Both the position numbers and the translations under genes were made by a program. The notes under the pieces are model-generated. The model did not search any database and was not told where the DNA came from. It saw nothing but the letters and a program-made list of their open reading frames with translations. A stretch of 37,700 nucleotides of DNA from Choristocarpus tenellus KU-1152 (Eukaryota > Protista > Phaeophyceae): contig CAXNAD020000037.1 in the NCBI GenBank assembly GCA_964200185.2, forward strand, positions 1 through 37,700, given 5' to 3'. This document shows, piece after piece, positions 8,901 through 34,153 of the stretch (within the stretch, counting starts at the first letter, position 1; each line of letters begins with the position of its first letter).

Positions 8901-11900
8901 CAGGAGAAGTGCAGTTTCATAGCGTTCTCGTACTACTACTGGTACTTTCTCACATTTGTGCTACTCTTCAGTCTCATGAGTGCCATCGTGACATCGCTCA
9001 TCTCACCCTCTCCCAAGGTTTGTTGGAGTATACAGAGAGGTGTTCCTGTGTTGTGTTTGGAGTTAGGGTTTGGCTTTTGTGTTGTCATTTTGTTGTCCTT
9101 TGTGCATTGTTACACCAGACCACTGTCGATACGTCATTGGTCCACTTTTTCCTTATCCTTGTGTGTTACTTTGATTTTTTTTCTTATCGGTGTATGGGGT
9201 TAGGGTTAGGGCTAGGGTTAGGACTAGGGTTAGGGAAGGAAGAAGTGTGTGCTCACCAGCTCCTTGAAATAACCTAGTCCAACCCTAACCATCAATAGCA
9301 ACCCTCATGCTGTGATCACCCTCATTTTCCCAGTCGGTCTTATTCCTAACCCTAGCCCTAGCCCTAACCCTAACCCAAACCCAAACCCTAACCCAAACCC
9401 AAACCCAAACCCAAACCCAATTTATTTTAATGACAAAACTGTGGCAGGCATGGCCCTACCTCTTACTCTAGTCTTCCTAGAGGAATCCGTTCAGGTCCTA
9501 ATATCATATCAGACCCTAACCCTAACCCTAATATCATATCATACCCTAACCCTAAGCAATTTGGTTCGTAACCCTGGTCCTCATTTTCTCAAACCTGGAC
9601 CCTGGCAGGCCTAAGCAAGGCCTGTGTACATGCATCACTGTCAGTTACACTGTGTTGTTACTAATAGTCATGCCTCAATTAACTCTGACCTCATCAATTT
9701 CTATTTGTAAGTATTTCAATAGTCCTGCCTCACAGGTATAATACCTGTCCAATTGTTGTACTGTAGTAGCCATAACCCTCTTAATTATTGACAGTGACAT
9801 CCTTTACTGTAACCCTGATGCTAAGTACCAATTTTTTTGTAACTCCAACTTGAATTTATAACAGATAGCACAATATAGCCCTAACTCTATCCATGGTATA
9901 TACACAAACATACATAAACCCTAACCCTACATATATACGGTATTGAATCGTCCAATGAACTTAAAAAGCTCTAATATTACTAGTTTCATTTCCATTTGCC
10001 AAAATGAGCAAGTCTAATTAGCGCCTGGCCCTAACCCTAGCCCTAACCCTGTTAACCCTCCTTCATTAATTGTGATCCACAATGTGTGTTGTGTGTGATG
10101 TGTGATGATTGTTGTGCAGGAGGAGACGGTGTACTTGGCTTTTGTGTTAGCGTTCATTGGCTTCTGGTGGTTCTTCTTCGGGCACTTCCGATTGGTAAGC
10201 ATGGGTCAGGGTCAGGGTTAGGGTTAGGGTTAGGGTTGGTAAGTAACAAGAATTTTGTCTCTAATTGAATGTATTACATCAACATGAATATAGTTACAAT
10301 TCATTTTTTACCACAGTAGTAACAGTCATAATGCCATTTTCAACATACAAATCCAACCTTTAGCCCTTGCCCTAACTCTCAGTGTAAAAATGCTCTCATG
10401 TGTTGATTTCTTACTCGTATGACTCTAGATTTTTGGTTTGATGAATAGTGGGGTGTTGTAAGGGCTCAGGCATTTGCTTACATTAGATGCAGTTATTCGC
10501 TGTGTAGAGTTCTTCAAGATATGCGTATCAGGTGTGTCAATGTGTGTCAATGTATGATAGCCTTGCTGTGTATGGTACAATATGGTACAGTGCATGCCAT
10601 GGATTAGGGTTAGGGCATAAATATATTGATTTGATTCGTTGAGTTAGGGTTAGGGTTAGGGTTAGGGTTAGGGTTAGGGTTAGTCTTAGTGATAAAAGTA
10701 TTTAGTAGAAACCTGTTCATGTGCCTTCCTTTTTGGCTATGTGTCAAAAAGAAGAAAAAACTTAGGGTTAGGGTTAAAGACATGTAAGACATGGTGTATG
10801 CTCTACCATGTAAAGGAGGTTAGTTCCATGCGACCTGTACCAGCTGGATGTAGCACTCACCGTCCCTAACTTGATACTGTATTGTATTGTATAGATGTAT
10901 TGTATAGATGTATTGTATAGATGTATTGTATAGATGTATTGTATAGATGTATTGTATTGTATAGATGTATTGTATAGATGTACTGTATAGATGTATTGTA
11001 TAGATGTATTGTATAGATGTATTGTATAGATGTACTGTATAGATGTATTGTATAGATGTATTATATAGATGTACTGTATAGATGTACTGTATAGATGTAT
11101 TGTATAGATGTATTGTATAGATGTATTGTATAGATGTATTGTATTGTATAGATGTATTGTATTGTATAGATGTATTGTATAGATGTATTGTATAGATGTA
11201 CTGTACCTGATATGTCCGCACTCTACCTAACGTGTTTGATGTTGTCAGCTGTATTCAGCCATGCGTTATCGCAAGTCAGTTCTGTACACCCTGTACCAGC
11301 TGGAGACCATTGTGATCTTCTTCTTGGCTTGCTATCAGATCTTCAGTTTGATGGGGAGTATGACTCTGGTAAGTCATTTGAATATATGATGCATGGTACT
11401 GCCTTTGCAATGCCTATGTAGATCAAGCGTTGTTATTTGATGGGTTAGGGTTAGGGTTAGGGTTAGGGTTAGGGTTAGGGCTAGAAAACACCGGAAGTGG
11501 TCATCAATACATACATACATACATGATATACATATATATATATATATTGATATATAACATGTCAACCTAGTATTTATTAGTATAATATACATACATATTT
11601 TGATAACGTGTGAAGCTAGTATTTATTAGTGGTATAGTAGTGATAGTGTGGAACTCACTGGTAGATGGATGGAACAAGGTCTCTATTATTTAAAAGGAAT
11701 ACTCTAACAGTTAATATTTGTTTTGGTACACTGGACTGTGAATGGCAAGCGAAACTCCCTCTGGTGTATCCCACCTATTCTCTCCACTATTGTACTTTTA
11801 TACCAGCAGTGATTCCTTGTTGACAAGAATTCACATCTGCCCACTTTTGGCACAAGACATGGTCAAGGTTAGCAGGGCTAGGGTAAGGGATTGCTTGCAC

Positions 11901-14900
11901 CCTTTCCTTGACGTAGATCAGGGTTAGGGTTAAGAATTGATTGTACCTTTTTTTGTCTTGTCTGTGACTTAACCCTAAGTAGTTGAGTAGATGAGTCACT
12001 CCTCCAAGAGTGATTGGAGGCGTTTTGAACATTTTCTCGTTTCCTACTCCCAGAAAATCTGATTCTAGAGGATGATGAGTGCCAAGGGGTGGTGGCTTGA
12101 TCCTAACCCTAACCCTATTTCTTTGTGTTGAGAGCAGTATTCTAGCTCTACAGGTAGCATTAATGCATGAGAGGTTAAATATTGAGGTAGTATTAATGTA
12201 CCACTGTACCAGAAAAGAAGGAGGTGGCATGTGTATCTGCCCAAATGGTACAGTGGTGCATGAATACTTTGTAGTTGATACGCTTGGCCAGCTTCTCCTA
12301 TCCTCTCCTGACATGTTGACTTGAGTTTTTCTCCTCACCAGCCAAATCTTGTAGAAATATTCATTGGGAATGTACTTAGCAAGAGTATTGCCTATTGTAG
12401 AGCTATTCACTTAGAAAGAGTATTGTCTGTTAATTTGGCATGTTCAATGAATTCATGCAGGGAGGGTATTCCGTTCTAATCCCTTATGTGTTACTACTAG
12501 TAGTCACTGGTTACCCTTCTCAGGTTTTGAAAAAATGAGCAGCTCACCCTGGGTGGGGTTGCACTTTTACTACTACTACTGCTGCAAATATTAGGTTTGA
12601 TTGAATCGCCTTCATTCAACCAAGTGTGATTGAAGTGTGATTGAAGTGTTGAGTGATGTTTTTTGATCGACCATTTTTAGCATCAATGTGTGCTGCTCAC
12701 TCTGCTTGCTGGGTGCTTGCTGGGTGCTTGCTGGGTGCTTGCTGGGTGTGGTGATTTGTGTTCCTCAATCTGTGCTTTGCATGTACGTTTCGAAAATATT
12801 GAGCTCGTTGCTTTGAAGTTTTTTTTGATAGCTGATTTAACTTCTATTTCCACGTTTTTCAACTTCTGGTTCTCAACACTGTTGATAATCATTACCCATG
12901 GTTCCAATGTATACATTATTCCAGAGTAGTTTTTTTTTGTTTGTAAGGTGGTTGCTGTTCCTACCACTCTATAACTAACAATGTACCACATGTACAATTT
13001 TCAATCCTAACCCTAACTGCAATGTATGGAGTAGGATACCCCACGCTTCTATCATCTTATATCTCCCACGACCATTCCAGTATTAGTCCTGACACACTGA
13101 CAAACACACTTTACAATGTGTCTCTGATCTCTCTTCTGTCCTATCCCCAATCCCTAACCTTAACCCCTACCCCTCACAACTCTTTGCAGTTGCTAGCTCC
13201 GCTGGCGCCTGGGTCCCCGGTCCCGGTTCGCCAGAATCCTGGTTTAGCGGTAGTGACTCTAGGAGTGGGAGCAGGACTGTGGTTCATCGTCTTGTTGTGT
13301 GGGTTCTACCAGATTAGAAAGGTTAGGAATAGGGACTAGGGTTAGGGATTAGTATTATATTTGGCTTTTTCGATATGGTAGTGTAGTATTTTAGCAAAAG
13401 ATGGGCTATCTGATTGATGGATTGATGGTTTGATTGATGGACTGTTGTATGTTGTGCCAATATGTTTTAGAGGTGAAGGTAATTAATGCTGAGGATTTGA
13501 AGTGTGCGTTCCTATACAATAATGGATTAGTATTGACAATGGCATATTGGTGTTGTGTATTATTTTGTTAATATAAGTAGGGTTGGTTGGGAACAGGGTT
13601 AGGGTTAGGGTTATAGCAATCTTTTTTTAAAACTGCAGTATTGAAGTACTCTTGTGTTGTTTATACATAGATCCAGTGTGTGCCCTATGATAGCTTCATC
13701 CACCTTTCAATCCCCAAGCACTATCTTTAGTGTACTGCATTGCCTTGAGATAGCCTCAACCCTATAAAGATTGTCCTGTCATTACTATAGTGCCTTAGCC
13801 TGTCCAAACTCTGAAATCTCCTGGAGTGTACCGTCCTATGTGTAGGTAGGTTCATCATACCTCATCACTCACCCTGGAGTGTGTACTCCCCCGATCCTAT
13901 CCTTTCTTTGCTGGACTGACACAACCCTAACCCTACCCCCTCATCTCTGTAGCAACTATCAATGTTACCTCAAAGCTAGTTGTCTGGTCTACCATACTAT
14001 TGTGGTCATTTTGTCATCTAAGTCCTAATTGTACCTAACATTGATTCAACCACAGTACCAGTTACAGCACAACTTTCTAGACCATTGATCCATTGTACCA
14101 CCTCCCACCCTATTGAATCAACTACCATACCATGGTACCACCATGGTACTAGCACTTCTGGTCAAACCACTGTCCCACCAAACGTACCTCTTTTTTGTAT
14201 ATGATATTTTATGGTTCTACCCCTAACCCTAACACACCCTGTACTGTTTTGTTTGACTGAACCGTAACTTTTCTGTTTAAAAAATATTAATATTTTGACA
14301 GGCACACTACTTCAAGAGCCTTCCTCTGTCCATCGAGAGGTCCATCTACCTCAAGGAAATAGCACCGGTCAGCACTTTTTATCTTTGTATTTTTTAGAGG
14401 TTACACCGATTCAATATTTTCTGTCAATAATGTGTAGGTGTAATTTGAAATACTGGTATTAATATACCAATTGCCTGTGACTTGATCCTGTTTTTGTCAT
14501 TGATCAACCAATGTGAGTAGAAATGTTGGACTAGTTTATTATTTGTTTTTGTATATATACTGTATTAGTTATGATAAAGGTTTGAAGATGAAATGTTATT
14601 CCGTCTTGAGTGTATATGAGATGCGTTGATGATTTGAATTTATATTATTGAGTGTTTTTTTTTAATGCTTAAATCTCTTTGAAACGAGTTACTATTTTTG
14701 TAAATGATTATAAATTTAACTTAAATTAAAAAAAAGTTTGTTCTAGATTATGTATTTACTAATGTTTTGTGTGTTGTTTGTTTTTCTTGTTCATGATAGA
14801 AGCAACAACCCCTAAGATGTGAGTTCTTTCCTCTGTTAGTGTCTTTTGGTTGATTTTGTTATTTCGAGCAACTGGTTATCTTAGCTGTCAAACTAGTATG

Positions 14901-17900
14901 TTGAAGATAATGAACATATAAAAATGGAAGGCTTACCTTTGATTATTTATTTGTGTGTATTTGGTGCTTGTTTTCCTAGATTTTTCTTTGTGGTGTGCCT
15001 ATGGTACCTTCCTGATCTGCGTGTTTTGGCGCACATTTTGACGCACGTTTTGATGCACGTTTTGATTGTAGTCAAGTACAAATTAATTCAACTGTGCATG
15101 GGAGTTTGTGAGCCGTCTTTCTTGCTTTTCTATCATATCAATATATATATATATATATATATTATACCACACCATGTTATTACTAATATAATATATTCAG
15201 GGCGTAGAGTGATGAGAACTTAGGGTTAGGGTTAGGGCTAAAATCCATCAGATACTTAGGTGGTAGAGAAGTGAGACAGGGGTCTTGAGTTAGACCAAGC
15301 AAAGGTTGAAACCCTGGAATCAGCATTTTTACTTGCATGTTCCTGAATACCCAGCTGTGATTGAATGATAGACCAGTCAGAACATGAAGCACTCCCCTGA
15401 TTGACTGGTTGGTTACTGATTGTTTTGGGGTCACTGCGAGCTGGTTGTGCGTCTGACACTTACCTTGTGAAGTACTTGACTGACCACAATGGGTGGTCTG
15501 CCTGTGAAACTCCCACACATGTCTGAATGTAGTCTGGCCCTAAGCATAATTGTCCAACAGATGTAGAATGGGCCCTGTACCTGAAAGAATACTTTTTTGT
15601 TGTTTGATTATTGTGTTATTTGGATTCTAATTGTGTTTGCTGTTTCTATTGCTATTATTATATTAGGCTATTTTAATCTGTATATTTTCTATTATCATTA
15701 ATAGTTAATTATTTGTGTTAGGATTAGGGTTTATTAGGGACTTTTTATGTACTTGATGTGTAGTAGTGTGTACTGACTACTTCGGCTCATTTTTTTGTTC
15801 TTAAGACTTTATGTGCATGTTGCATTTTTTTATGAATGTGTTCCCATACTATATAAGTAGAACACAAACATATATTTATGTATATACACATACATATGCA
15901 CCTCTAGATTTTTTGCAAAAAGTTAAATACTGCTTTTCCCTTTTTGGGGTGGTGGGTTTTGTAAATCTCAGGGAGGCGTGGAGATCCAGCAGGCGCGGTT
16001 CTCATCATGGCTATTGGACAAGTTCCGTGAAAAACCAGACAGTCCCTCGCAACCCACTAAGTGTGGCATGCTCCAGGGGAAGGTAAGTCAAGCACTACCC
16101 ACTTCTTGACTTATGACAAGATTTGATGAGATGTAATGAGATGTGACAACTTCTAGTGTTATATTCCTGTTTTGTGAAGAGACTATTAGATTGAAGAGCT
16201 GATGCAATATATATATATATACATTTATATTATTTGTATGTTGATATGATAGTACCACAAAGCAGTGCATTGGACGTATAATTGTTAAAAGTGGTCTGAA
16301 GCTCTTATTATGTGATAGTACTGCTACCAATACTACAGTGTAATAGTGTTGCACCCTAGCCCTATTTTAAATACTTTTATCACTGTTGATACTTTTAATT
16401 TTGTGACAGCATCTTAGACTTTTGAACAATGTTATCTCAGGGACAGGGGCTATTAAAGTTCATTTTGTTTATTTTTGGGTATTTAAGAAATCCTTCTGCT
16501 GACAGGCACCCACTCCCATGCCTGAAATCTACCCAACCAGTCCTTTGAAAGAGATTGATTCTAGAAGTGAATACAAGCATTTGTCCACATAAGTGTGAAT
16601 CCAACCTTGAGAGTGGTAGAACCAGTATACTATTAAATGTAGGAGAAGGCACTCTCAGGAGAACTGAATAATCAATACCATTCCCCTCCAATGTACATAC
16701 ACACAGGATGTGCCTGATATCAGGACTAGTTAGTAATTCTGTGTTGAAGTCTTTCCGTTGGATTGTTATCATTTGTGAATAGAATGAAGAAACATTGTTG
16801 GTAGGCCATGGACTGTAGGGACTGTTAACATTTGGGTTAGGAGCTTGTGGTGATAGTACTGTTGAATTGATATTGGTTGATAGTTGGGTTGGGGCTAGGG
16901 TTAGGGTTAGGGCGGTTTTCTGATGTAGTGTGTGTATGTATGCTCTGTGTTGGGGATCTGAGAGAGGCACTATTATTATTATTATTATTATTATTAAGTT
17001 GTAGGTGTTAGTATTAGTGGTACTTGTGTTCATGATTATTGTATAGTGGGTGACTCTTTGAGGTGTTGATACTGTAGTTAGTCCCTTGGTGAAATTGTAA
17101 TATCTCATAGTCCTGATGGACAGCACAGGTTTGTTTTTTACTTTAATTAGGTGATCCCTACCATCTTTTTAAGAGTATGGGTTAAATAATAAAGTGCTAT
17201 GGTGTATGTTTTATTTTTTTGTATTTTTGAATAATCTTTTTTTAAATCTCAAGCCCTATTACAGTTTCAAGTCATTGTACTTCCGAGAAATATTGTGTAT
17301 TGTTGTTACAAGTTTGTTCTAACTTAATTTTATTGTGATAACTGTGAACCCTTACCCTAACCCTAACACAGGACCTTTGGCTACAAGGCATGCTAACACT
17401 GGAGACAGTGTACTTGGAGTTCAAGGCTGATGTCCATATCTTTGACCACTTTGTCCATGAGAGATACCACTATCAGGTAATGGGTAATGACACTATCAAT
17501 GATATTAACAGTGTTAATGATAGTAATAATGTTTATGATATTAATGATCATTCACTGATGCAGTCGATGAAGGATAGTGTACTGTTGAAGTTCTACTATT
17601 AATGATGACTGACTGATGCAGTTGGTGAAGGATAGTGTACTATTTATGTTGAGGTCTATGTTTTTTGTAGCGTGTGATATGATGATACCCCAATCTCCAA
17701 CCCTGAAATGTATGATATTGTTATTTTTTGGCATACATACCGTGTGCTAGAGTTAGGGTTAGGGTTATTAGCTAGAGTTATTGATTTTTTATTTACCTAG
17801 AATTGTGATGCAACTTGGTCTATCACCTACTGAGGTAGTATGGTAACAAGAAGCAACCTGCAGTCATGCACACTAACCTTAAGCTGTACTTGATTGATTT

Positions 17901-20900
17901 TGGAAATAAAAATAAAACTTCATTTTAAGAATATTATTGTGAGACTAGTGGTGAGACTAGCGTTAATAAGGTTAGTGGTGGGACTGTGATACTCTTGTAT
18001 ATATATATTTTTATCATTTTTGAACTTGTAAGTAATAAAAATAACTGACAAGAGTACAACCTGCTTCCTGCGTATCAGTTTTTTTTATGCATTTTTTTTT
18101 AATGTTTTTCTCCTGCTTTTTAATAAATAATTTAATAAATGATTTCCAGGATGTGCTTGCTGTAAGGAGGCAAGGGACTAGTTGTATGGTGTTCAAGATT
18201 GTACACCCCACCAAGAGACAACTGGATGACCTGGAGATAGTGTTTGACTTCCAAGATCCCAAGATATGTGCTTCAATGTACAAGGTTGGTTAATGCCTTG
18301 ATGCCTTGTAACAATAATAAAATAATTAGTATGAATGTGCATTTTACTGTTTTTATTTATTCAGCAGTAGAGTCAGAGGTGGTGATGAGTGAATGTGTGT
18401 TAGTGTGTGTGTGACAGGTTGTTTCTATTGGTGGAATTGTTGCTTTTTTTATTATGGGTATGATAGCATGTACAGTGATAGCTTGTACAGTCAAGTTTTT
18501 ATACTTGGAGTGATTGGAAGTACTTGCAAGTGGGATATAGGCACTTGGTGCTCATGTTGTGTTGCATCATGAATACTTCAAGACACATTTGCAATCTTTC
18601 CATTCAATGTTGTTGATAGACCCTAACCCTACAACCTGAATGACAATCACACAGTTGTACCTTTCGTGTGTGTACCTTACAATAACAAATAAGACTTAAC
18701 TCATGTAAGACTTCATCTTCTATATGTACCTTAAATTGACCAAACCTTGTTACTTGTGTACAATTGTACCTTTTCGTATGTACCTCAAAACAACCAACCC
18801 TGATCACTCATGTGTGATTATACCTTTTATGTGTGTAAGATATACCCTAAAGTGACCAACAAGTTGGAATTGCACCCTCACCATCTTACCTTGCATTGCC
18901 ATCTTAGGGGAAGGTTCGTTTTGGCAGTTTCAAGGTTGATATTTTAAAAACCTGTGCAGTATTGACCATAGGCATGCCTGAAATTCCGACAAATTCGATT
19001 GGTAGGGTATGGCTGCAGAAGATAGCATTTGCTGTGTGAACACATTTTTAGCTGATAGTTCCCTCCACAGAGTAGTGATACCTGCCATGAAGACTCAGTG
19101 ACAGTGCCCTCTTAGATGTTATCACTCTTGTCTGCCCTAACCCTAACTACTCAAAACAAGAGAAATGTAATAACAGGTGCAGGGGACACTGTGTAGAGTA
19201 TCTGAATTATTGTGTTGTATCATTCCTAATCTCTTTGTTTTTTATTATTAATGTCCCTGTTTTATGTTGCAATAGTTCCATTTGTATTTTTGTTGGTGTG
19301 AAACCCAACAGTTCAATTAGCCTCAGCACAACTCATTGGAATAGCCCAATATCTGAACTGAACAATTTTGGTTCATTTAAAATAATTAATATGATTCGAA
19401 TAATGACAATTATGACCAAGAGGTGTCTATTAAACATGGATTCTTTTTTTTGGTAATCTGCCCTACTCTTTCTTACTCTTTCTTACTCTTCCTACTATTT
19501 CTACTCTTTCTTACTCTTTCTACTATTTCTACTATTTCTTACTATTTCTACTATTTCTACTATTTCTACTATTTCTACTCTTTCTTACTCTTTCTTTCCT
19601 AACCCACATCACTCTCGATTGGCCTCAAATGCCTTCATCATGCCTCTCTCTTCCAAATCTTCCCATTATTAATCTTTTTGTCAAAACCTTTGTGGGTATT
19701 TGTTTTCAAAGAGGGGGAGAAATCTCTGGAGGCGTGTGGGGAGGAACATGGACCTTCTCCTCAAAGAACGGACTAGGAAGCTGAAGAAACTCAGGAGGGC
19801 TGGCAGGGGAGTTGAACTGGACATGGAAGAACCTGACCTAGTGGAGGTTAGCACTAGAGATAGGATGGGAACAGTAATGTACCTGGGTGTGGTGCCTGTG
19901 GTGCCTTTTCATGGATGATATTTTCCGTTGTGTTATGTTGTGTATTATGTTATTATTTTGTATGTTGAGTTGGTTCTTTGATGTGCCTGAGCAGTGAGGG
20001 CCATTTGTGTTAATGGTGGTATGATGTGGCTTATTCTGGAAGAAGGGATATGTGTTTTTAGGTCTCTCAGAGGGTCACAAGGTGATTCGTTTGTTGTATT
20101 GTAGCAGGTGAGGCCTTCATTGAGGTTTTGTGTTGTTGGGTTAGGGTTAGGGTTAGCATGAGTGCTGTTTAACTGGATGTTTGATTTTAATGTCCTCCCT
20201 ATTTTTTGTTTATGGTAATATGGTTGGTGATATACCCCATCCTACTTTACTCAGTATGATCAGAAGATGGAGGTAACCCTAACCCTAACCCTTACCGTTT
20301 CAAACATTGGTACATCTTAAAGGACATGTTGGAGAAGAAGCATGTTCATTACACTGTGTAGTGTCTACCGATATGATCTGCATGTCTTTGATACATTGTA
20401 TATATATGTTTGTAGGTAGTCCAAAATTAAAATAACATAATCTTGTATTTTGATGGTGATAATTATGAAGAAATATATACATACCAAGTGTATAAGTACC
20501 AAGTATATACATACCAAGTATATATAAATATCAAGTATATATAAATATCAAGTATATAAATACCAAGTATTTAAATATCAAGTATATAATACCAAGTATA
20601 TAAAGACCAAGTATATAAATATCAAGTATATAAATACCAAGTATATAAATATCAAGTATATAAAGACCAAGTATATACATACCAAGTATATAAATACCAA
20701 ATATATACCCGTAGGTAAAACGTGCTTGAGCAGATAATAGGTATTGTACCGTCTATGTAGACCAATAAAACAGTCTGTGTTAAATCTAGCCAATAGGGTG
20801 AGTTGAACTGTCTATATCCATCAAAAGAGTACCCCTCATGTTAGACGCAGTGGTTTCTTTTGCATATCCATTTTTTCTGTGACCATTGGTTTGAGAAGAC

Positions 20901-23900: not shown

Positions 23901-26900
23901 TATTAGTAGCAATAGGAGCAAATGGTGGTTATGTTGTTGTGCTTGTATGTCAAGGGCTTGAGATATCATGCCATGCCACCAGGTGGGGGGGGGGTTTGAT
24001 ACAGTTAATAAGGTTAGGGTTAGGTGTAAAGTGAGGATTTTCTTAGTGAAATTTTATTGACTTGAGCATGTGTTTGGTGTATGGTGTTAATTGTTGGGAA
24101 AGTGCTTTGGGGTAAAACATTTAACTTTTTGTTTTATTTTCTATTTTTTTTAGCATTTGTACAAATATTAATGAGTTCTTACTCACCTTACAAGGATCTT
24201 AATGTTTGTTACAATCTGTGATTATTGGTTGTTGATTGTTGGTTATTGATTGTACAGGAGAGCAGTGAGGAGGAAATGGATGATGATGTCAGTGATAGGG
24301 ATGATGAATCAGACTTCAGCAGTGACTTGTACACCAACCCTGGACCGGAGATGGTGCTCCTGGGTACCCTTCGCAAGGTGAACATTATCGCTGGAGGCCT
24401 CTTTTGTGCTCAGGAACATCTTTCACTATGAATCCTCCAATTGTGGTAATAGTAGTGATTTGTTGTAAATATTTGTGGGTAAGGTGGTATCTTCTTTAAA
24501 AGCTTAGTTGCTACAAATATGTTTGCGGGAATCATTAATATATCTTGTGAGTTAACAATCTTGAGAAAGGGATAGACCGTTGATTTTTGTTCTTATTCTG
24601 ACTCTGTAGTTGTCAGGTTGGGGTAGGGTAACTGCTTCATTAATTACACAAAAACCAGTTGTGACATTATAAAATGATTATGTAAATGTGTAGGGGTTTT
24701 TTCTTACAGCCAATATGTTAGGTGGTTGAGACCCTCTCAAATGATTACTCTATGCTTTCCTTCCATTCCTAACCTTAACCCTAACCTTAACCCAATGAAC
24801 TGATATGGGTTGATTGTGCACATTTATGTATCAAACCCTAACCCGTGTGTATGGATGTCATGCATTTATAATGATTCGGTTTTAGTTAGGTTCACATTTT
24901 TTTTTAAATTTCATTAGTATTTAATCACACACAAAATTTACCAGCATTTCTCACTCCTATAAGGGTTACACCAAACAAAACCAATTCGTAGGGCTGGATA
25001 CTATGACTGCTATTTTAATTTTAATTTTTCTTCCCTAATCTATTTTGAAAATATAAAATGAAATACAAAAAAAAATGCAGGACGACATCTTTGGAGTAGT
25101 ACCATTCTTGCTGTCAAAGGAGAACCAGGTGCCCACTTCTGGTCTGAATTTCACAGCCAATGATGATAACACAGTGGTGTTCTCAGTGGATACTGCATTC
25201 CTCAAGGGAGAGCTGCTCAAACCTAAGAAGGATATTACCTCTGCCTTTTACAAGTATCTTGCTGTCATTTTGGGGGAGAGGACAGAGGCGGCGGAGGATG
25301 CAATGTTCAACCGTAAGGTGTGTGATCAAATATTTATTCTTTGTAGGTGTGGTGTGTATTGTTTATTTTTGTTGAAATCAGTTGCAGAGCAGTGATTGTC
25401 TTGTGCTATGTAATAGGGTTAGGGTTAGGTTTAGGGTTAGGGTGAGTAAGTAAAAATTGAGTAGTGTATTTCTAGTTCCTTGAGCTATGCTTGAAATCAG
25501 TACAGAGTTTTTGGATAGTAGAATCTACTGAATTTGGTATTGTTTATAGTTGATTTGTTACTGTTATCGATTTTGATGGTGCTATTTTGATACATGATAT
25601 TTTGATGTATAATATTTTGATACATGCTATTTTGGACAGGTGCGAGAGAAGCGTTTGGAGGTTGCCAGGCTGGAGGAGGAGATGCTGGCAGCACAGTGGC
25701 AGGCAGAAGAGGAACAGGGCATTGGGGCAGACCCAGAAAAGGCCGGGGAGGCAGCCTTGGTACAAGGGACCATGACCAGGGACCAGGTATGCATGTGCAC
25801 GTCTGTATTGACATTGACACTGATGCCAGGCAGGGGGTTTGTTGGTTAGGGTTAGGGTGAGAAGCAGTAATGTTTTTTTCAAGTTGTGACATTTAGGTTG
25901 ACATTCAAATGTTGCCTTCTATTTCTTCATGGGTGGAAACAGAGCCAATTTTGGTCATGTTTGTGAGCAGTGTGTTTTCAAAATGGTGAAATGGCTGACT
26001 TTGTTTTGTGGATATTTTTACCATTAGTTAGCATCCTATTTCTTTTTCTTAGTATTATTAGTAATAAAGTCATAATGTGTGCTCTTCTTCTGTCCCTAAC
26101 CTTAACCTGAGGCAGACCAAAATGCCTGTACAAATATTGGGTTGATTGATACTTAATACAATGTTTACTTACGGGATTCTATGTGATCATTTTTGTTCTA
26201 AAATATATATTTGTGCCATATAGAGGTAACTTGAAGTAGTTGGTAGTTCTTTTTCTATTCATTTGATCAGGGTTAGGGTTAGGGAGGATATTGTACTATG
26301 TTCGCTTCTGTTACTATCGTTATTGCAAGGTTTAGTATTAGAGTTGGTACTAATGACTGTCACTGTGTGTGTATGTGCTTTGTATGTTTGTTGGTATGTT
26401 TGTGTGTGTGTGTGTTCAGGATATTCGGCAGCTGTTCAATTTCACTGCCACCGAGCATGTTGCTAGGGAATTCAAGGGACGCTATGTGTACTTTGACCAG
26501 GCAGAGAAAAAGGTGAGGTACTATCAAAGGTCATACTCTTCCACTAATAGTTGGAGTAGTTATTGTTACATCTTAAAGGGTAATGGGGGAGGCTGTATGT
26601 GAATGCCATCTCAGAGGGGGTGGCATTGAGTTTGAAGGTCCTCTATGACTGCGTTGTGGTGTTTATTTTGGTACTCCTGTGGAAGGCTATTTGGGATGTG
26701 TTCACAGATAACCTTTTTTGTACAGGTTTGTGCTCATTGCGGTTGTTGACTCTAACCCTAACCCTTTTCAGTCATGGACGTGGTCTATAATGGTCAAGGT
26801 CCTTAGAAGGCCTTTAAACCAAAAGGGATAAAATGGACCCCTCTTTTTGTTCATTCCACTTCAAACAACAAGAAACATTTGGTTAGAAGAATGAAGACCT

Positions 26901-29900
26901 TTACACATGCTTTATCTACTGATAGAGTAGTTTATACAGCCAATAGGATTGCATGCATGGATTGTGTGCAGGTGATAGAAAAGGGTGATGGTGGCCTTAA
27001 TTAACCTATCAGTATTAAAAAAACTGACCCCTGTGTGATCGAGATTCATTATATACCTTCAATGGTATCAACCTCACCCTTGTACCAACCCACTGTCCTC
27101 ATCTTTGCCAGAAGCAATATCTGATTTTTTTTTAAATGGCAACTTGACAGAGACTGGAGGTCTATTTTCCTCCCTGGTGGTGGTGCTATTAATGGCCCTG
27201 TCCCTGTTTGTTGCTGTTGTCTTATTTGTGCCTATAATACATGCCAGGTTTTGCATGAGGAAACTGGCGTGCTTATCCATGTTTGATTAAATTCTTGTGG
27301 GAATGTGTTGCGTTACATTGTCACTGATAGGATAATATTATGAAGTTAGGGTTAGGGTTATATGTTCAGAAGAGGAGGGGTTAGGGTTAGGGTTAGGTTT
27401 AGGGTTATCACCTCATTACCATGAGTACTCTTATAATATTTGTTGTGGGGTGACTGGAAACATAGAAGGAATTGGTATTATTTTAGAATTTGTGTAGTAA
27501 TCTTTGGGTTGAATTGAGAGATAGCTTTGAATGGAGCCATAGTTCCGAAGAATCATATCCTTGGTAAAACCTTTTTTTGCCCAGTATTCCCTTCACTATT
27601 ATCTTAAAAATATCATGGGTATGTAAGGTGTGTATATATTTTTGCAACTTTGGAAGTTGTGGATTTTTCATTTTTTTCTTGTGGAGCTGAACTGATGTTG
27701 AGGAATGTATCACTCCTTGGTTTAAATTGATATATTTTTAATATGTTACATTCCAATAGATAATTTTTAATTCTTATTTCCGTCCTAATTTTTTTTTAAT
27801 GTTTGTTGTACAGGAGGTGAAGATCACAGGTACCTTCTACATTACCACCCACTACTTTGCATTTGCTGGAAAGAAGATAGTGGATGTCAGTCACCTTGAG
27901 ATCAACCGGCAGTTCAAGGTGGGACATAGCCACAGTCAAATATTTACAAATATATATACATATGTTGTATATATATTTGGGAATGAAGTGTGGGGATGCC
28001 CTGATAGGACAGGGAAGGATATTCCCTGACTGGAGCTTTTTTTCATCTTCAATATTTTCTTTTTTATTACTGTATGTACACTGTATTCCACTGTATGTAT
28101 GCATATTGTATTCTACTGTATGCGTGAAGCTTATGTTATGTGTGTTATGTGTGTTCTATCTCCAGTATCAACTGATGCCAAAAGGTAGATTTTATAGTAA
28201 TAATATAATGTGTTAGAGTTATTATAAGTATTAGTAGTGTGTTTAAGGTAAATGGAGTTGACTGTTATTTGGACAGCACTATTATGACAATAATATCATC
28301 TTGGTATTTTCAAACATAATAGTGATTAATCGACTTGGCCTTGTCAAAGAGGATCAGCAACAGAATTAAGAACAAATGTCCACAGGGGGGGGTGACATAT
28401 TTGTTGCAAGGAGTGTTGCTATCATTGTCTATTTGATGTGTTTTGTAGAAGTTGATTTAAGAATAGCTTGCATGTATAGAAGGACGATTGGATGTGATCT
28501 GGTGCTCTTGACCTGTTGTGTATGGTTCATGGAGCTCTAGAGGTCTGAGCAGAATGCTCTCAAATTCAACTGTGGGAGATAAGCTAAGACGGGCTGGGTA
28601 ATGCATTGACTATGTGGTTCACATGTTTGATGCATTATCAGCAATGGCAGTGATCTGTAGGCTGTCCTGCCCTTCTTTTGCCCGTCAGTGGCATAGATAG
28701 TTTTAATATTTTAAACAAAATCACACATTGTTTTGGTGCATTATTATTAATATGTTGTTGCTGGTTCTGGTGCTGTTATGTGTGGTGTTTTTCAATTTGT
28801 GATATTTATGTTATTTATGATATTACTATTGTTGGTGCTGTTGATACTAATATTGTTGGTGCTGCTACTGTTCAGGATGTGATGCGTCACGATGAGGTTA
28901 TCACAATTCGCTATGCAGGCTCCAAGGGTGTACTCTTCACAAACTTGAGACAACAGAGGAAGCTCTTTGAGGTGAGATTGTAATGTCTTGACCACAATTG
29001 AATACTGTCCTATGAATGGTATATATTGAATAGTAGGATTAGTTGTTGGTGTTGATTGTACTGGATCATTGTACTAGGATCAGGAAGATGGCCATGGTAC
29101 CATTTTAATGTTTATGTATGTACATATTTCAAGGTGTACATTGATTTAAATGACAAGCAGGCTGCTTAGTGTGTATCTTGTGTCTGTCAAGGCATTTTGT
29201 GTACCTCATCATGTCATCAAGAGAGGTGTTGGGAGTTGATGTTTACATTTCTTTTCTGGATAATAGCAGTCTAGGGTTAGGGGTTTTGCCTCTCTGTTAA
29301 ATTGTTTTTATTCTCATTTTATTTTTATGTTTTTTTGTTGGGTGCATTAACTGCTGAGTGTCCGAACGGAGGGGTCTTGGTGATCATGTTCTATTCAAGG
29401 GGAATTGCTTTCATGTATTTGTAATAATGTGCTACAGTATGTATATGAGATTGTGGACTGTGTAATGGTAGTGAGCCATCTGAAAGCATGTATTGATTAA
29501 TTATATGAAAGTTTTGTATCAATACATACACATGAATATGTTTGCTTCTTGTGTATATTCCTTGAGCAGTATTCTAATTCGTTGTATGTGTTTATTGTGT
29601 ATATATTTTTATTTTGTACTATTCAATATTATGTATTGAATTCTGTGCATTCCTTGAGCGGTATTCCTATTCATAGTATGTGTGTATTGTGTGTACAGTT
29701 AATGCACCAATCCATGTTAAGGATATATTGTTGTGTTGATTGGTGCTGTATATATGTATTTTATTATTTATTTCCTCTTGTACCATGTGCCCATTCAACT
29801 GTTTGAATATTTTTTAGTAAATTGTTCCGTTATGATCTTAATGTTCTTAACATAGTGCTGTCCTTTTCGCATGTCACTAAACAAAACCAATACTATATTC

Positions 29901-32900
29901 CCCATACTGCAATCATAGTAATATAATAATATAAAGGGTGACGGGGTGACAATAATAATAATGATAATAACAGTAGAAATGCTGGAGTGTTCTGTGCTTT
30001 GATAAAATTTGCTGTTTTGTTAATTTTTGTTGTATGTTTTCATTACATCTTTTCTTTTCATCTGCCAGTACTTAACACTGCTGCAGCTTTACTTGTTCAA
30101 AGTGGGATCAGGGTTAGGGGTATTGTATGTATTGTATTGTATTGTGTGGTTTTAACTTGGGTGTGTTTTTGTTGCAGGTGAAGTCAGCCAATAGCAGGGA
30201 GGTCTTTTTCCGTGACTGCATGTCGAAGTGGAAGAGAGAGGATGAGGTGACCAGCAAGGAGATGCGAAAAACACTTAGGCGTAAGATGACCAGACTCAGT
30301 CTTGGATACCTCAACCAGGCAAGGACAGGGGAAGAATATGCAATTTTTTTGCTCAGTCGCATTTTTTTGGTTTAATATCATTATGTGTGTACTCAGTATC
30401 ATCATGTGAAGAAGGGGCTTACTACCTGAAGGGTGCATTCATACATCTTCTGGCAGTTTTGCATTGGATTTTATTTTGTAACCCCTTTGCAGTTTGCTGC
30501 ATTATGTTTTTTTAGGGAAGAGTTTCCTGCATGGTGGAGGTGTTACTAGAGAAGAGAGCACGCCTGAGAAAAGTAATGATTTAACTCATTTTTACTTCAC
30601 AAATTACCACAAATTGCTGTCTTTTTTTTAACAGACGGAGCAACTGACGCAGAAGAGCATTGGGGTACTCATGTCAGACATGTCTGAGAAGGAGAAGAAG
30701 CAGCTATTTGCTGGCAGCGTCCCCATTGGCCTCAACCGTAATCAGGTGAATTGTGTGTTTTAGTGATAGAGGTAAGGTTAGATTAGGGTCAGGGATGTAC
30801 GATTGTAATGTTGATGATGTTGTGTAGCAATTACAATGGTCATGGCTTACGTTAGTAGTACCTAAGTTGATAGGGTTAGAGCTGTCTGCCACTAGATTTT
30901 AATGTAATCAAGATGTTAATAGAGCTTTTTATGACGTATGACAAGAAACATTCCACTGGTCTGAATATTTTTTTGACTAGCCCTTCCACTGTCATGTCCC
31001 TTCACCACACAGCGCTGAAGTAGAATTAAGAGGGGTCAGGTTACCACCTGGGTTTTTTTTGTTGGTATGATGTAGCAGCGAACACCTTTTTGTAGCATGT
31101 ATTGGTATGATAGACTTAAAACACCCAACTTCAACAAAGTGTGCACCAACGGAATGTGAATGTGAAGACATATCCAAACATTATATGAGATCAAAGGTGT
31201 AACACACAAACTATTGTCATCTTTGGGTTCAGTTTATTGCCTCTTGGCAGGGCGAGGGTTGGGGTTCCTGATATCTCTCTCAATCATGACATGCCTCCAT
31301 TACCATTATTCTATATCTTTAGATGTCAGCTCTGCAATACGCTTATCCTTGTGTCATTCTAGCCTACCTAACCCTAACCCTTTGGGTGTGATTTTTTTGC
31401 TGTGGCGATGATACGGTGATGTGGTCAGGTGGTTATCGGTGAGCATAATTTCAACGACAATCTGTACCTTCTGTGCACTGGTATTGTCAGGGTACAGCGA
31501 GTTCAGGTGAGTTAGAGTTAAGGTTGTTCATGTCCATTACGTCAAAGAACCAGACAGTGTAACAAAGGTAGATATTTATTCCATGGATGTTGATTAGTGG
31601 GTGGAAGATTGAAGTCAAAGTGTTGTTGGTACTTGTGACGTAGACTTTTGCATTTCATTTTATTTTGTTTCATTTTTGACAAAACGCACGATTTTATTTT
31701 ATTTTGCAGTATGGTGATATGATGTATTATGAGTTGGTTGAGCGTTTGAATTTGGATCATGCTTTCTTGTGTTGCATAATATTCTATGTAGACTTCCTAC
31801 TTGGGAAAGGACACTGCTTGTTTTTTCTATCATGGATTTGAAAAATATGTGTTTGTATATATTTGTTATAGTTCTGTTAGCTAGTATTCACACTCACACC
31901 AGCATTGTTCAGTGAATTCATCCCTTAGGTAAATCATATTTATATTGATAATGATGCAATGACCTGACTATGTTCAGTGTTCTTGATAGCTGTCAGTCCA
32001 TAGTTGTGAGAATCTTGCACAGTCTGGTTCACTCCTAAACAAGGAAATTTGTCAGGCATGTCTCTGTCAAAGAGTCTTAATCACCAGTATTTACTACCTC
32101 TTGGATCAAATTTTTTCAGACTTGAAAAAAAACATATATGCTCGTCTTGCATTTTCTTGAAGGATTTTCTAGAAGGTATGTGGTGTAATTGTTGGTTATG
32201 TCAATTTTACCAATTGAGGATAGCTTCTAGCCTACTACACAAAAAGCATGTGAATGATTTTTTCCACTCCAGAGTACTTGGTATAGCGAAAAGGAAGAAG
32301 TAAATATTATTTGCCTAGCCTTGGGCGGTTATTGCAATTTTCAATTCTAGTTGATTTTTAATTACTCTTCTTTAGATCATTTAATTGGTACTTACCAGAA
32401 CTTGTGGTTGACAGCACTATGGTAACATGATGTTTTTGATAGCTACAATAAAATTCGGGATGTCGTGGCATTGGTTGGTCTCCTAACCCCCTTTAGGCCT
32501 TGACATGGTTAGATACCAGCACTTTGCATTGCGTGACTACTTTGACTTTGGCTATTTAGTGTAAGATATAATGTAAGATGAGGCATTAAGCACTCAACAT
32601 GCTATATCACCTTTGATTCCTTCACAACACCTCCATGTTGACTATTGTGAACTTAGACAGAAGTACTAGTCCAAATCAACCAAGTCTCCCCCTCAATATG
32701 ATACATAATATGGGTCGTTGTAATTATTTTGGTTACCTACGACATGGTGTTATTTCTTGAATGATATTTTTTGTCAATTTTTATGCTGTCGATTTATCAA
32801 GATGGGAGTTTATTCAATAGTACAATTACAAGTAGTCAGGATTTGAGTTTTTTCAGTTCATCACAATTGCTGAGGATCTATCACCATTATTTCAACAAAA

Positions 32901-34153
32901 GCATAGAATTGATGACATGAAGTATCAACTATCTAACATAAACGGTACATATTTTACCTTCACAGTAACCTTCTAACCCCCCATATGCGATTGGCTTGAA
33001 TCTCTAACCCCAACCCTCAAAATTGGTGGGCTTCCTTTTTTTGTCTATATTTGCTAACCCTAACCCTGATTATTGTCCTTATCCTGCTGCGGCAGTGGTC
33101 TCCTGTGCTCCCTATTTGACAGCCTTCTTAACCCCTGTTGCAATACTCTTTTCTTGTGTGATGTTTACCTCCATCTCGTCAATGCACTTGTTTGTCCAGG
33201 AGCATGTGTCCAATGTCATGGATAGTGGAAAGGCTTTGGATCGTGTGGTGTTCCAAGAGATACACTCAGGGGAGATTTTCGGGTTTGACTCATTCCTGAC
33301 GGGTTCACCTGCCTACAGCTCTATAGTGGTGGACTCTGAAAAGGCAGTGGTAAGTATCAATATTTCTGTCAGCGAAAGGATAGGGTTAGGGTTTATTGAT
33401 GCTATCATTGAGAGGATGCGACAGGTCCTTGAGTTTAAGAGTGTTAGCAACATAATGGAAGAGTGCATTAGTTGATGGACTTCAAAATTTGAGTATTTAC
33501 ATGAAAATGATTTAGATGTAAGTTCTCAAAATCAAGGAGATCTAAGTTTAATATTTACAGTATGGATAACTCTAGTTTTTAAAGTGATTTTTCTAATTAT
33601 TTTATTAAACAGTTAGAAGAACTAATCTAAATATTTATATTGTTATTTTAGTATTTCAGGTCAACATGCAGAAATTAATATTCAAGAAATGACAAATAAA
33701 GTTGCTATTGGTTTCGAACCAGCAATGTTCTAAATAGAAAAATGGATTATGAGTGCGTCACCTCATTTTAATGAATTAATTTTTTACTCTTAAATTTTAT
33801 TTTAAAATTAAAAATATAAATACTTTTATGACAAATTCAAATGAAGTTAGAAATATTATTAGCCAGGTAACGATACAAGGTTAGAATTCTCATTCTAGTG
33901 GAAGATACGGGTTAGAGTTGACCTGTCTTCTATCCTATTGTCAGGAGTGTACCATTACACCTCAAGCCCTGAATCCTGGACTCCTCTTATATTTTTGTGT
34001 TACAATATTTTGCAGGTTCGATCCTGTACAAAAGAGCAGATCATGGCCAGGCTCCGGGAAGACCGTCGCCTTGCGAGCAAGTTCTACCGAATTGCTGCTG
34101 TTAGCATTGCGTCTCGCCTCGCTGAGATTAGCCCCCTTGATATCTACCTTTGA
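5815..34153 (+). CDS. Multi-exon gene (~26 exons, ~1,026 aa): ~4-TM membrane protein with tandem GRAM/PH-like and cyclic-nucleotide-binding (CNB/CAP_ED)-like domains (TM-GRAM-CNB-GRAM-CNB)
   Basis: Exons 5815-5968, 8731-9017, 10120-10194, 11339-11368, 13190-13321, 14302-14367, 15972-16082, 17372-17476, 18150-18284, 19712-19846, 21238-21333, 21813-21899, 22299-22436, 23255-23293, 23785-23859, 24258-24377, 25081-25317, 25640-25786, 26420-26512, 27814-27918, 28876-28971, 30178-30318, 30635-30745, 31429-31506, 33200-33349, 34016-34153 join into one stop-free frame (3081 nt including TGA). CNB motifs: GQTLLSTGEEFTSVYHVAQGSIDV...LGTLRKDDIFG and LYLLCTGIVRV...EIHSGEIFG. GRAM motif: IRQLFNFTATEHV...ITGTFYITTHYFAF. 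The 5' end is the least certain part. Confidence 0.85.
7478..7614 (+). CDS. Possible optional exon (TSTKLDVGVLNDWRRVEFAQERLS...)
   Basis: tttttcaag acceptor is in frame with exon 5815-5968 and a gtgagg donor lies at 7615, but that donor is phase 0 and incompatible with exon 8731 unless a weak GC donor at 7604 is used. Confidence 0.3.
8731..9017 (+). CDS. Exon: acidic linker and first TM helix (YWYFLTFVLLFSLMSAIVTSLI)
   Basis: ttttccacag acceptor, aag|gtttgt donor, open frame. Confidence 0.85.
10120..10194 (+). CDS. Exon: TM helix (EETVYLAFVLAFIGFWWFFFGHFRL)
   Basis: tgcag acceptor, gtaagc donor, 75 nt, phase 0/0. Confidence 0.85.
10876..11205. repeat. 13-bp minisatellite (TGTATAGATGTAT)n, intronic
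   Basis: Directly visible, >20 units with TGTAC and extra TGTAT variants. Confidence 0.97.
11339..11368 (+). CDS. 30-nt exon (IFSLMGSMTL), part of a TM helix
   Basis: Pyrimidine tract plus atcag acceptor, perfect gtaagt donor, phase 0/0. Confidence 0.7.
12704..12748. repeat. 11-bp tandem (GCTTGCTGGGT) x4
   Basis: Directly visible. Confidence 0.9.
13190..13321 (+). CDS. Exon: TM helix (LAVVTLGVGAGLWFIVLLCGFY)
   Basis: tctttgcag acceptor, aag|gttagg donor, GC-rich. Confidence 0.85.
14302..14367 (+). CDS. Exon (AHYFKSLPLSIERSIYLKEIAP)
   Basis: ttttgacag acceptor, gtcagc donor, phase 0/0. Confidence 0.8.
15972..16082 (+). CDS. Exon (GGVEIQQARFSSWLLDKFREK...CGMLQGK), start of GRAM/PH-like module 1
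   Basis: ctcag acceptor, aag|gtaagt donor, 111 nt. Confidence 0.8.
17372..17476 (+). CDS. Exon, GRAM/PH-like module 1 (DLWLQGMLTLETVYLEFKAD...)
   Basis: ccctaacacag acceptor, cag|gtaatg donor; QG-x-L-x-L...YLEF resembles the GRAM 'QGRLYIS.NYLCF' motif. Confidence 0.85.
18150..18284 (+). CDS. Exon, GRAM/PH-like module 1 (DVLAVRRQG...ICASMYK)
   Basis: ttccag acceptor, aag|gttggt donor. Confidence 0.85.
19463..19594. repeat. 9-10 bp minisatellite (TACTATTTC / TACTCTTTCT)n
   Basis: Directly visible. Confidence 0.95.
19712..19846 (+). CDS. Exon, basic helical linker (RGRNLWRRVGRNMDLLLKERTRKLKK...)
   Basis: ttttcaaag acceptor, gag|gttagc donor. Confidence 0.8.
20474..20708. repeat. 15-bp minisatellite (A(C/T)CAAGTATATAAAT)n
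   Basis: Directly visible, ~15 units. Confidence 0.95.
21238..21333 (+). CDS. Exon, lead-in helix of CNB domain 1 (...MVTYKEWQKVLEGVK)
   Basis: ttcaag acceptor, aag|gtgaac donor. Confidence 0.85.
21813..21899 (+). CDS. Exon, CNB domain 1 beta1-3 (IHVLTEGQTLLSTGEEFTSVYHVAQGSID)
   Basis: ctctaacag acceptor, gtgaga donor; matches the CNB pattern G-x-x-h-h-x-x-G...hYxhxxGxh. Confidence 0.85.
22299..22436 (+). CDS. Exon, insertion within CNB domain 1 (VNEQVDIG...QSYAK)
   Basis: ttccag acceptor, aag|gtcagc donor. Confidence 0.8.
23255..23293 (+). CDS. 39-nt exon (ALAKRQGVNRMEE)
   Basis: tttggcag acceptor, gag|gtgcat donor, phase 0/0. Confidence 0.7.
23785..23859 (+). CDS. Exon, acidic insertion (DSQIEYEDPEDVHNNILQDDSGSSE)
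   Basis: cacag acceptor, gag|gtaagt donor. Confidence 0.8.
24258..24377 (+). CDS. Exon, acidic insertion and return to CNB1 (ESSEEEMDDD...VLLGTLRK)
   Basis: gtacag acceptor, aag|gtgaac donor. Confidence 0.85.
25081..25317 (+). CDS. Exon, CNB domain 1 C-terminal half (DDIFGVVPFL...AFYKYLAVILGER)
   Basis: tgcag acceptor (A-rich upstream), aag|gtgtgt donor, 237 nt open. Confidence 0.9.
25640..25786 (+). CDS. Exon, coiled-coil-like linker (VREKRLEVARLEEEML...)
   Basis: ggacag acceptor, cag|gtatgc donor. Confidence 0.85.
26420..26512 (+). CDS. Exon, GRAM domain 2 start (DIRQLFNFTATEHVAREFKG...)
   Basis: ttcag acceptor, aag|gtgagg donor; F-x-x-F...E pattern of the GRAM N-terminus. Confidence 0.85.
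27814..27918 (+). CDS. Exon, GRAM domain 2 core (EVKITGTFYITTHYFAFAGK...)
   Basis: gtacag acceptor, aag|gtggga donor; GxxYITxxYxxF GRAM motif. Confidence 0.9.
28876..28971 (+). CDS. Exon, GRAM/PH fold 2 (DVMRHDEVITIRYAGSKGVLF...)
   Basis: ttcag acceptor, gag|gtgaga donor. Confidence 0.85.
30178..30318 (+). CDS. Exon, PH-fold terminal helix and linker (VKSANSREVFFRDCMSKWKRE...GYLNQ)
   Basis: ttgcag acceptor; GC donor CAG|GCAAGG at 30319 (alternative GT donor after 30246). Confidence 0.8.
30635..30745 (+). CDS. Exon, CNB domain 2 lead-in (...LMSDMSEKEKKQLFAGS...)
   Basis: ttttaacag acceptor, cag|gtgaat donor. Confidence 0.85.
31429..31506 (+). CDS. Exon, CNB domain 2 (VVIGEHNFNDNLYLLCTGIVRVQRVQ)
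   Basis: gtcag acceptor, cag|gtgagt donor; LYLLxxGxVxV CNB motif. Confidence 0.85.
33200..33349 (+). CDS. Exon, CNB domain 2 (…EIHSGEIFGFDSFLTGSPAYSSIVVDSEKAV)
   Basis: tgtccag acceptor, gtaagt donor; GEIFG motif. Confidence 0.9.
33470..33870 (+). other. Probable organelle-derived (plastid-like) insertion in the last intron
   Basis: Abrupt A-rich, AT-rich block with AT-ending codons: end of a broken ORF SISGQHAEINIQEMTNKVAIGFEPAMF* (33650-33733), an AT spacer, then a new ATG at 33828 (MTNSNEVRNIISQVT). Layout is operon-like; gene identity not established. Confidence 0.4.
34016..34153 (+). CDS. Terminal exon, CNB2 C-helix (…LASKFYRIAAVSIASRLAEISPLDIYL*)
   Basis: ttttgcag acceptor, TGA at 34151-34153; helix parallels CNB1 'SAFYKYLAVILGER'. 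Confidence 0.9.
   Translation, partial: VRSCTKEQIMARLREDRRLASKFYRIAAVSIASRLAEISPLDIYL

Follow-up and report, generated by a model that had tools for sequence, protein, structure and literature searches.

Does the orientation of a telomere-type repeat inside an intron depend on the splice site beside which it lies? The question is raised by contig CAXNAD020000037.1 of the brown alga Choristocarpus tenellus KU-1152 (assembly GCA_964200185.2; 164 Mb in 27,310 contigs), whose entire 37.7 kb were analysed and are referred to here as the window. Its plus strand carries, at 8731-34141, a single gene with 25 or more exons, the product of which is a SCAMP-GRAM-cyclic-nucleotide-binding-domain protein, and the introns of this gene contain many short arrays of the hexamer TTAGGG (G arrays) or of its complement CCCTAA (C arrays), as read on the sense strand. 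An original prediction, made from the sequence of the window alone, held that G arrays follow donors (5' splice sites), that C arrays precede acceptors (3' splice sites) and that pairing between the two kinds might guide splicing. The polarity is present in the window, and we assign a probability of roughly 0.55 to the explanation that ordinary splice-signal constraints filtered dense telomerase-type insertions by their orientation.

Orientation of telomere-type arrays near splice sites

An exact-tract scan of the window returned 66 telomere-type tracts of 9-41 nt each, none of which overlapped any of the 25 exons, and the arrays called by Tandem Repeats Finder (TRF) matched the repeat at 92-100%. 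Each array named in the original prediction was recovered by TRF, by the exact-tract scan and by reading of the sequence. These arrays consist of near-perfect tandem TTAGGG hexamers, a few to tens of units long and at non-terminal positions, which is the description by which interstitial telomeric sequences (ITS) are recognised.

Same-type tracts no more than 60 nt apart were merged, and the 24 introns then held 48 clusters. Those lying within 100 nt of donors were exclusively of the predicted G type (9 G to 0 C), and nearly all of those within 100 nt of acceptors were of the predicted C type (1 G to 7 C); the donor and acceptor ends differed with P = 4e-4 by Fisher's exact test and 3e-4 by permutation of the orientation labels. 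Restricting the count to supported exons left ratios of 8:0 at donors and 1:5 at acceptors (Fisher 0.003, permutation 0.001), and tracts of at least 12 nt gave 7:0 and 0:5. Arrays lying more than 150 nt from both intron ends showed no positional difference between G and C (median relative position 0.41 vs 0.47, p = 0.31). The polarity in the window is limited to about 150 nt around splice sites and, since interior arrays are unbiased, it is a splice-site-proximal effect rather than a gradient along the whole intron. Full-text literature searches returned no earlier report of a splice-site orientation bias of telomere repeats.

The window was chosen post hoc out of about 1,600 windows, and a chance extreme with no general polarity behind it, singled out by readers already inclined to look for CTAAC ahead of acceptors, could give the same picture. 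Other loci break the rule, the genome-wide test on the donor side was null, and the window is an outlier in array density: it makes up 0.023% of the genome length and holds 9 of the 2,344 genome matches to an array pattern of 24 nt (17-fold). However, the P values of the window (3e-4 to 1e-3) hold at the level of clusters with homology-validated exons, and independent genome-wide data reproduce the acceptor bias (z about 2.7-3.9). We consider it highly improbable that the pattern is due to chance. Outside the window, the acceptor-side bias alone replicates.

In the repeat-guided splicing system of the original prediction, UUAGGG near the 5' splice site would pair with CCCUAA near the 3' splice site and so join the two ends of the intron, as (GU)n and (AC)n repeats do in teleost introns (PMC4691745). 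Besides this precedent, the proposal could draw on the full complementarity of the two array types and on the cross-intron pairing seen in folds of introns 13322-14301 (11 bp) and 22437-23254 (24 bp). Yet the two arrays occurred independently of each other: acceptor-proximal C arrays were present in 4 of the 10 introns that had a G array near the donor and in 4 of the 14 that lacked one, with no excess of co-occurrence over independence (Fisher p = 1, computed on an earlier annotation). Twelve of the 21 array-bearing introns carried a single orientation (8 G only, 4 C only; 9 carry both), and intron 10195-11248, which contains G arrays only, was correctly spliced in an RNA contig. G and C tracts paired in folds wherever both occurred, mostly locally and in the intron interior, and in minimum-free-energy folds the arrays bridged both splice sites in only 2 of the 24 introns. 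Genome-wide, GGGTTAGGG was followed by CCCTAACCC 10-70 nt on at 370 sites and the opposite order was found at 348, so there is no general rule of G before C. Neither co-occurrence, folding nor genome-wide order thus lends support to an end-to-end duplex, and we regard looping by the repeats as very unlikely. Of the original prediction as a whole, the polarity stands, as does the simpler alternative that it offered, namely exclusion of the AG-containing TTAGGG near acceptors; the pairing system does not.

Constraints at acceptors and donors

The AG-free run before the acceptors of the gene had a median of about 60 nt (range 23-173); from random intronic positions, the first AG was reached after a median of 14 nt. 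TTAGGG cannot sit inside such a zone because each unit holds an AG, and the AG-free zones of the window contained 8 C tracts and 0 G tracts; G tracts were present at the zone edge. CCCTAA is AG-free and pyrimidine-rich and contains CTAAC, which is the canonical branch-site core; CTAAC or CTAAT is a recurring motif of the final 100 nt of the introns. In 7 introns, 8 acceptor-proximal C tracts are followed by no AG before that of the true acceptor. A comparable boundary was seen at one clear exon of another contig, C4, where G arrays lie 46 and 113 nt before the acceptor and are followed by about 48 AG-free nt. In the introns between 9018 and 34015, the tract directly before the acceptor is U/G-rich (tgttgtgcag, gtgtgttcag) and not of the classic C/U type. 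Long AG-free zones and U/G-rich tracts together suggest, as far as sequence can indicate, that distant branch points may be the norm in this alga.

All genome-wide work consisted of pattern counts. For the acceptor side, arrays lying 10-70 nt from the acceptor-like motif TKKNCAGG towards the intron were compared with those lying towards the exon, which served as the control; motif-anchored counts without exon-side controls were dominated by chance motif matches and same-strand composition. C arrays were more frequent on the intron side than on the exon side (579 vs 481, p = 0.003), and G arrays were less frequent there (650 vs 746). Arrays that begin with CA directly before GGGTTAGGG themselves generate an acceptor-like motif, and a motif variant free of this artefact gave 454 vs 500 for G arrays. 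The ratio of ratios was 1.33-1.38, with z = 3.2-3.9 (about 2.7 allowing for multiple rows per long array). Both the window and the genome-wide counts therefore support the AG-exclusion alternative of the original prediction. The acceptor half of the polarity generalises, and AG exclusion together with the branch-site-like C strand accounts for it.

For the donor half, G-rich context is the best reading. Once telomere-like sequence had been generously masked, the first fifth of introns showed a GC skew of +0.28 to +0.32 and the last fifth one of about 0, and G content fell from 24% in the first tenth of introns to 16-18% in the last fifth. In the masked sequence, 3-5-mers in the G register outnumbered those in the C register by 2.5-3.2:1 within 100 nt of donors, with ratios of 0.5-1.5:1 near acceptors. 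Genome-wide, 118 G and 55 C arrays lay within 60 nt downstream of the donor-like motif AGGTRAGT, and 85 G and 44 C arrays within 60 nt upstream. The excess at donors thus reflects the G-rich context of the strand, since the ratio of G to C arrays is 2:1 both downstream and upstream of the motif. Wherever the strand is rich in G and T there are few C arrays, which largely explains their absence near donors. The original prediction had objected that AG exclusion would leave this absence unexplained; the objection is largely answered, by the G/T-rich context.

Strand composition is also skewed over longer distances. The sense strands of the window (8700-34100) and of C4 (10-34 kb) have more T than A and more G than C (AT skew about -0.15, GC skew about +0.2). 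At C4 and a set of kinase loci, sense-strand G arrays outnumber C arrays by about 2:1, a general transcription-strand asymmetry.

In the explanation that we favour, the arrays would be short ITS of the kind left behind when telomerase patches chromosome breaks. They would have entered pre-existing, mostly ancient introns in either orientation, and near splice sites two independent and ordinary constraints would then have sorted the surviving arrays. At acceptors, the long AG-free zone from the branch site to the 3' splice site would bar TTAGGG, and CCCTAA would be tolerated and may even be used. At donors, the G/T-rich sense strand would provide a context that suits G-strand repeats and does not suit C-strand repeats. 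G-runs are known intronic enhancers, and UAGGG is the hnRNP A1 consensus. The donor preference could accordingly come about by selection, both for G-runs as intronic enhancers and against CUAAC as a decoy branch site, or by seed-primed telomerase addition that favours the G-rich strand. No base-pairing between the array types would be necessary, and arrays deep in introns would remain unsorted.

Several results weigh against this filter. Compared with uniform placement in pooled introns, G clusters near donors (9 vs 2.6 expected, P = 6e-4) and C clusters near acceptors (7 vs 2.5 expected, P = 0.006) were in excess; C clusters near donors (0 vs 2.45 expected, P = 0.08) and G clusters near acceptors (1 vs 2.75 expected, P = 0.21) fell short of expectation by less. 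The polarity owes more to an excess of the 'right' orientation than to a lack of the 'wrong' one. A purifying filter alone creates no excess, so positive retention, local hot spots of breakage or a winner's curse in the choice of the window would have to be added. Favoured seeds, counted as masked k-mers, were no denser near splice sites than in the intron interior. The near-splice arrays at 29 kinase loci of known strand comprised 1 consistent with the rule and 3 not, and those on C4 comprised 1 and 2, respectively. The donor orientation effect was not replicated genome-wide (ratio of ratios 1.11, z = 0.4), in a test that is weak because AGGTRAGT is not over-represented (12,555 sites genome-wide vs 16,989 for the reversed control) and most of its matches are therefore not donors; its being rarer than the control suggests that strong cryptic donors are avoided. 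Lastly, the branch sites within arrays are putative only. No weight attaches to the lack of polarity around exons called by a splice-aware dynamic programme on contigs C3-C5, since that method also lost the signal of the window (p rising from 0.015 to 0.3-0.6).

The excess of arrays is exactly where it would be expected if telomerase scars had been recruited as splice signals, the C arrays at acceptors as working branch sites (in a subset of introns), through their tandem CUAAC units, and pyrimidine tracts, and the UUAGGG arrays at donors as working enhancers, each independently and under positive selection. This exaptation overlaps the filter and differs from it solely in its claim of function. 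It would fit the placement of C arrays 4-80 nt from the acceptor with no AG between, the recurrence of CTAAC and CTAAT at intron ends, the finding of a 17-nt C array in the orthologue from another brown-alga-like genome, where it lies 22 nt ahead of an acceptor, and the stimulation of splicing in animals by intronic hnRNP A/B and F/H sites (PMC1326234). However, the AG-free zones are just as long in those introns of this gene that carry no array, which makes the arrays dispensable. A rough estimate also gave no genome-wide excess at true splice sites: per AGGTRAGT, downstream G arrays stood at about 1.3 times and C arrays at about 0.6 times the genome-average density. The kinase loci and C4 supply counter-examples, and branch-point use and protein binding at the arrays are putative. 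We regard independent exaptation as possible although doubtful, and any recruitment of CUAAC units as branch sites or of donor arrays as enhancers as tentative. If recruitment did occur, a by-product of DNA repair would supply ready-made, orientation-specific splicing elements, and the excess of intact, correctly oriented arrays by splice sites would be a footprint of selection.

The composition data also bear on a purely mutational origin of the polarity, with no selection on the arrays. Telomerase would extend broken 3' ends that are in register, so that the G/T-rich sense strand at donors would seed G arrays and antisense GTTAG at CTAAC branch sites would seed C arrays. Insertion of mammalian ITS is documented as seed-dependent, with 78% having 1-6 nt in register at the break (PMC7215372), and a compositional gradient could in this way become an orientation bias, as it could by G-run selection and selection against CUAAC decoys. 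The fall in masked G:C-register k-mers from donors to acceptors agrees with seeding, but such seeds predict about 3:1 at donors and about 1:1 at acceptors, not 9:0 and 1:7. With favoured seeds no denser near splice sites than in the interior, the array excess is left unexplained by seeding, and the sharp stop of G arrays at the edges of AG-free zones points to selection. We therefore consider a mutational polarity unlikely.

Origin of the arrays and structure of the gene

Telomere-type repeats are abundant throughout this genome, the 9-mer GGGTTAGGG occurring in 38,256 copies compared with about 2,000 for a reversed-motif control (19-fold). The gene in the window has at least six intron positions in common with an array-poor orthologue, at locus L051 of a second genome (NCBI GCA_964200425.2), that of a GC-rich relative (53%). 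The introns of that orthologue are short and almost free of arrays, and their sequence is too diverged for an empty-site comparison; the only array in the gene is the 17-nt CCCTAA array mentioned above, at L051:6425-6441. Of the introns of brown algae, over 90% are reported to be ancient. Shared positions and ancient introns indicate that the arrays are later insertions and not relics of intron birth, and on the same grounds birth of the introns from telomere-capped insertions was rejected. A telomerase origin of the insertions would be consistent with their form.

Perfect palindromic head-to-head junctions GGGTTAGGGTTAACCCTAACCC, of the form (TTAGGG)nTTAA(CCCTAA)n, were found at 15 sites genome-wide (for example C73:64-85, C172:17734-17755 and C260:10903-10924), and tail-to-tail junctions (CCCTAA)n(TTAGGG)n with a spacer of 0-4 nt at 0 sites genome-wide. 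The head-to-head junctions are a rare, separate class, of a form that marks telomerase-extended ends joined end to end or by fold-back. We considered whether the order of G before C could stem from head-to-head 'double healing' of a break and rejected this, since such junctions are far too rare, with 0 in the window.

Array density is uneven across the assembly, at about 1.6 tracts/kb in the contig of the window, about 0.5/kb in C3-C5 and about 0.25/kb at the kinase loci. Six contigs (C73, C74, C97, C156, C172 and C197) recurred across all pattern lists. The members of one dispersed repeat family end in GAGTSAAAGTAYCTTAGGGTTAGGG, with telomere repeats joined to a multi-copy element (C799, C2865, C4330, C16050, C23510, C26612 and C336). 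C1 (120 kb, GC 23-27%) has no tracts and looks like a plastid genome. C2 (83 kb, GC 42%) has no tracts of at least 11 nt in its first 40 kb and only two of the 9-mers in the whole contig; the assembly may here include organellar or foreign DNA.

The arrays of the gene are listed in Table 1. The exceptions noted by the original prediction are genuine, namely the reversed order in introns 21900-22298 and 26513-27813 and the G tracts at 26269 and 30110.

Table 1. Introns and telomere-type arrays of the gene in the window; numbers in brackets are distances in nt from the nearer splice site.
Feature	Position	Strand	G arrays	C arrays	Remarks
Intron, RNA-confirmed	9018-10119	+	9062-9070, 9197-9235	9281-9555, 9917-9929, 10029-10050	77-nt AG-free zone
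Intron, RNA-confirmed	10195-11248	+	10214-10237, 10604-10683, 10762-10776		G arrays only
Intron, RNA-confirmed	11369-13189	+	11442-11480, 11920-11932	11970-11978, 12102-12117, 13006-13017	Degenerate C tract at ~13152
Intron, RNA-confirmed	13322-14301	+	13337-13347, 13595-13613	13923-13935, 14221-14233	Donor GTTAGG lies inside a degenerate G array
Intron	22437-23254	+	22534-22564 (+97)	23000-23017, 23205-23230 (-24)	Downstream exon 23255-23346 predicted only
C array at acceptor	17354-17367	+		17354-17367	Ends 4 nt upstream of acceptor; exon 17372-17483
C array at acceptor	21145-21167	+		21145-21167	70 nt upstream of acceptor 21237, the first AG after the array
C array at acceptor	31367-31381	+		31367-31381	47 nt upstream of acceptor 31428, the first AG after the array
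G array at donor	23880-23894	+	23880-23894		20 nt past donor 23860
Further G arrays at donors		+	25414-25443, 25844-25858, 33381-33393
Exception, G tract	30110-30119	+	30110-30119		58 nt upstream of acceptor 30177, at the upstream edge of a 58-nt AG-free zone
Exception, intron	21900-22298	+	22185-22194	22025-22044	Reversed order, C then G; AG-free zone of 23 nt, the shortest
Exception, intron	26513-27813	+	27345-27407	26752-26765	Reversed order, C then G; every array interior

The exon structure was established from an RNA contig and from orthologues. A single spliced contig of 1544 nt from an RNA-like run (X3) joins 8729-9015, 10118-10193, 11248-11367, 13189-13319 and 14300 onward, with GT..AG present at each joint. 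It fixes introns 9018-10119, 11369-13189 and 13322-14301 to the base and also defines intron 10195-11248. An orthologue search seeded with exon 25081-25317 retrieved two proteins, P0001 (893 aa) and P0004 (1020 aa), and in tblastn residues 1-885 of P0001 were collinear and in order across 11261-34141, with abutting query coordinates. Matches to the two proteins back 21 exon calls; the orthologue comparison also added an exon at 18150-18288 and shifted one acceptor to 33199/33200, away from 33123. Intron borders given by the original prediction proved exact wherever they were checked, 4 introns by the spliced RNA contig and 21 exons by orthologue collinearity. Exons 23255-23346 and 23785-23859 are prediction only, and another 5' exon sits upstream of 8731. 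Reading-frame continuity between exons was checked by script, and a 7-state coding hidden Markov model recovered 7 of 24 exons ab initio.

Pfam searches of the orthologues returned SCAMP, GRAM and cyclic-nucleotide-binding domains, an uncommon combination. Window exons searched singly with Pfam gave almost no matches; exon 8731-9017, as a single exon, matched SCAMP. The orthologues are 893-1020 aa long, and one is an intronless 3.2-kb transcript in two Joint Genome Institute (JGI) samples. The introns of the window also hold other tandem repeats: the 13-mer TGTATTGTATAGA in 25 copies (10883-11205), which the coding model misread as a minus-strand exon, the 9-mer CTACTATTT in 14 copies (19463-19595) and the 15-mer TATATAAATACCAAG in 15 copies (20474-20707).

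Relation to known systems

Like mammalian-type ITS (Nergadze et al., PMC2246262; PMC7215372), the arrays are short, near-perfect TTAGGG arrays at internal positions, mostly intronic and never exonic, and they share with them the occurrence of both orientations and the logic of seed-dependent insertion. They differ in being much denser, with about 1.6 tracts/kb in the gene and, across the 164 Mb, about 38,000 9-mers. For mammalian ITS, orientation with respect to splice sites was not analysed, and their effect on splicing was left open (PMC7215372); the present analysis answers the question of whether intronic telomere repeats interact with splicing. This genome amounts to a natural insertion experiment, in which introns have received a 6-nt repeat thousands of times in either orientation, one with an AG and a GT-like motif and the other with a branch-site core. 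The pattern of array survival reads out how long AG exclusion zones are, how far decoy branch sites are tolerated and how G-rich the surroundings of 5' splice sites are in brown algae, whose splicing code has barely been studied.

The acceptor side resembles the AG exclusion zones of Gooding et al. (2006, PMC1431707), with a long AG-free run from branch site to acceptor in which AG is barred and outside which it is allowed. In human genes, long zones of this kind are peculiar to a special exon class whose branch points are distant (PMC1431707), whereas here the zone is long in nearly every intron and filters the orientation of one repeat family. The structure-dependent (GT)n/(AC)n introns of teleosts (Lin et al. 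2016, PMC4691745) likewise combine complementary simple repeats with polarity between the 5' and 3' parts of the intron. Their defining feature, co-occurrence of the two repeats in the same intron, is missing from the window, where most introns carry a single type or neither, and genome-wide no rule of short-range order holds.

On the donor side, the likeness is to G-run and UAGGG enhancers bound by hnRNP F/H and A/B (PMC1326234), with which the alga shares G-triplet-rich sequence concentrated after 5' splice sites. Here the G-richness extends to non-repeat sequence, and use of such enhancers in brown algae, by analogy with animals, is putative. The constraints that we invoke are thus themselves known, and they call for no new splicing mechanism; what is new here is that ITS scars are sorted by known splice constraints.

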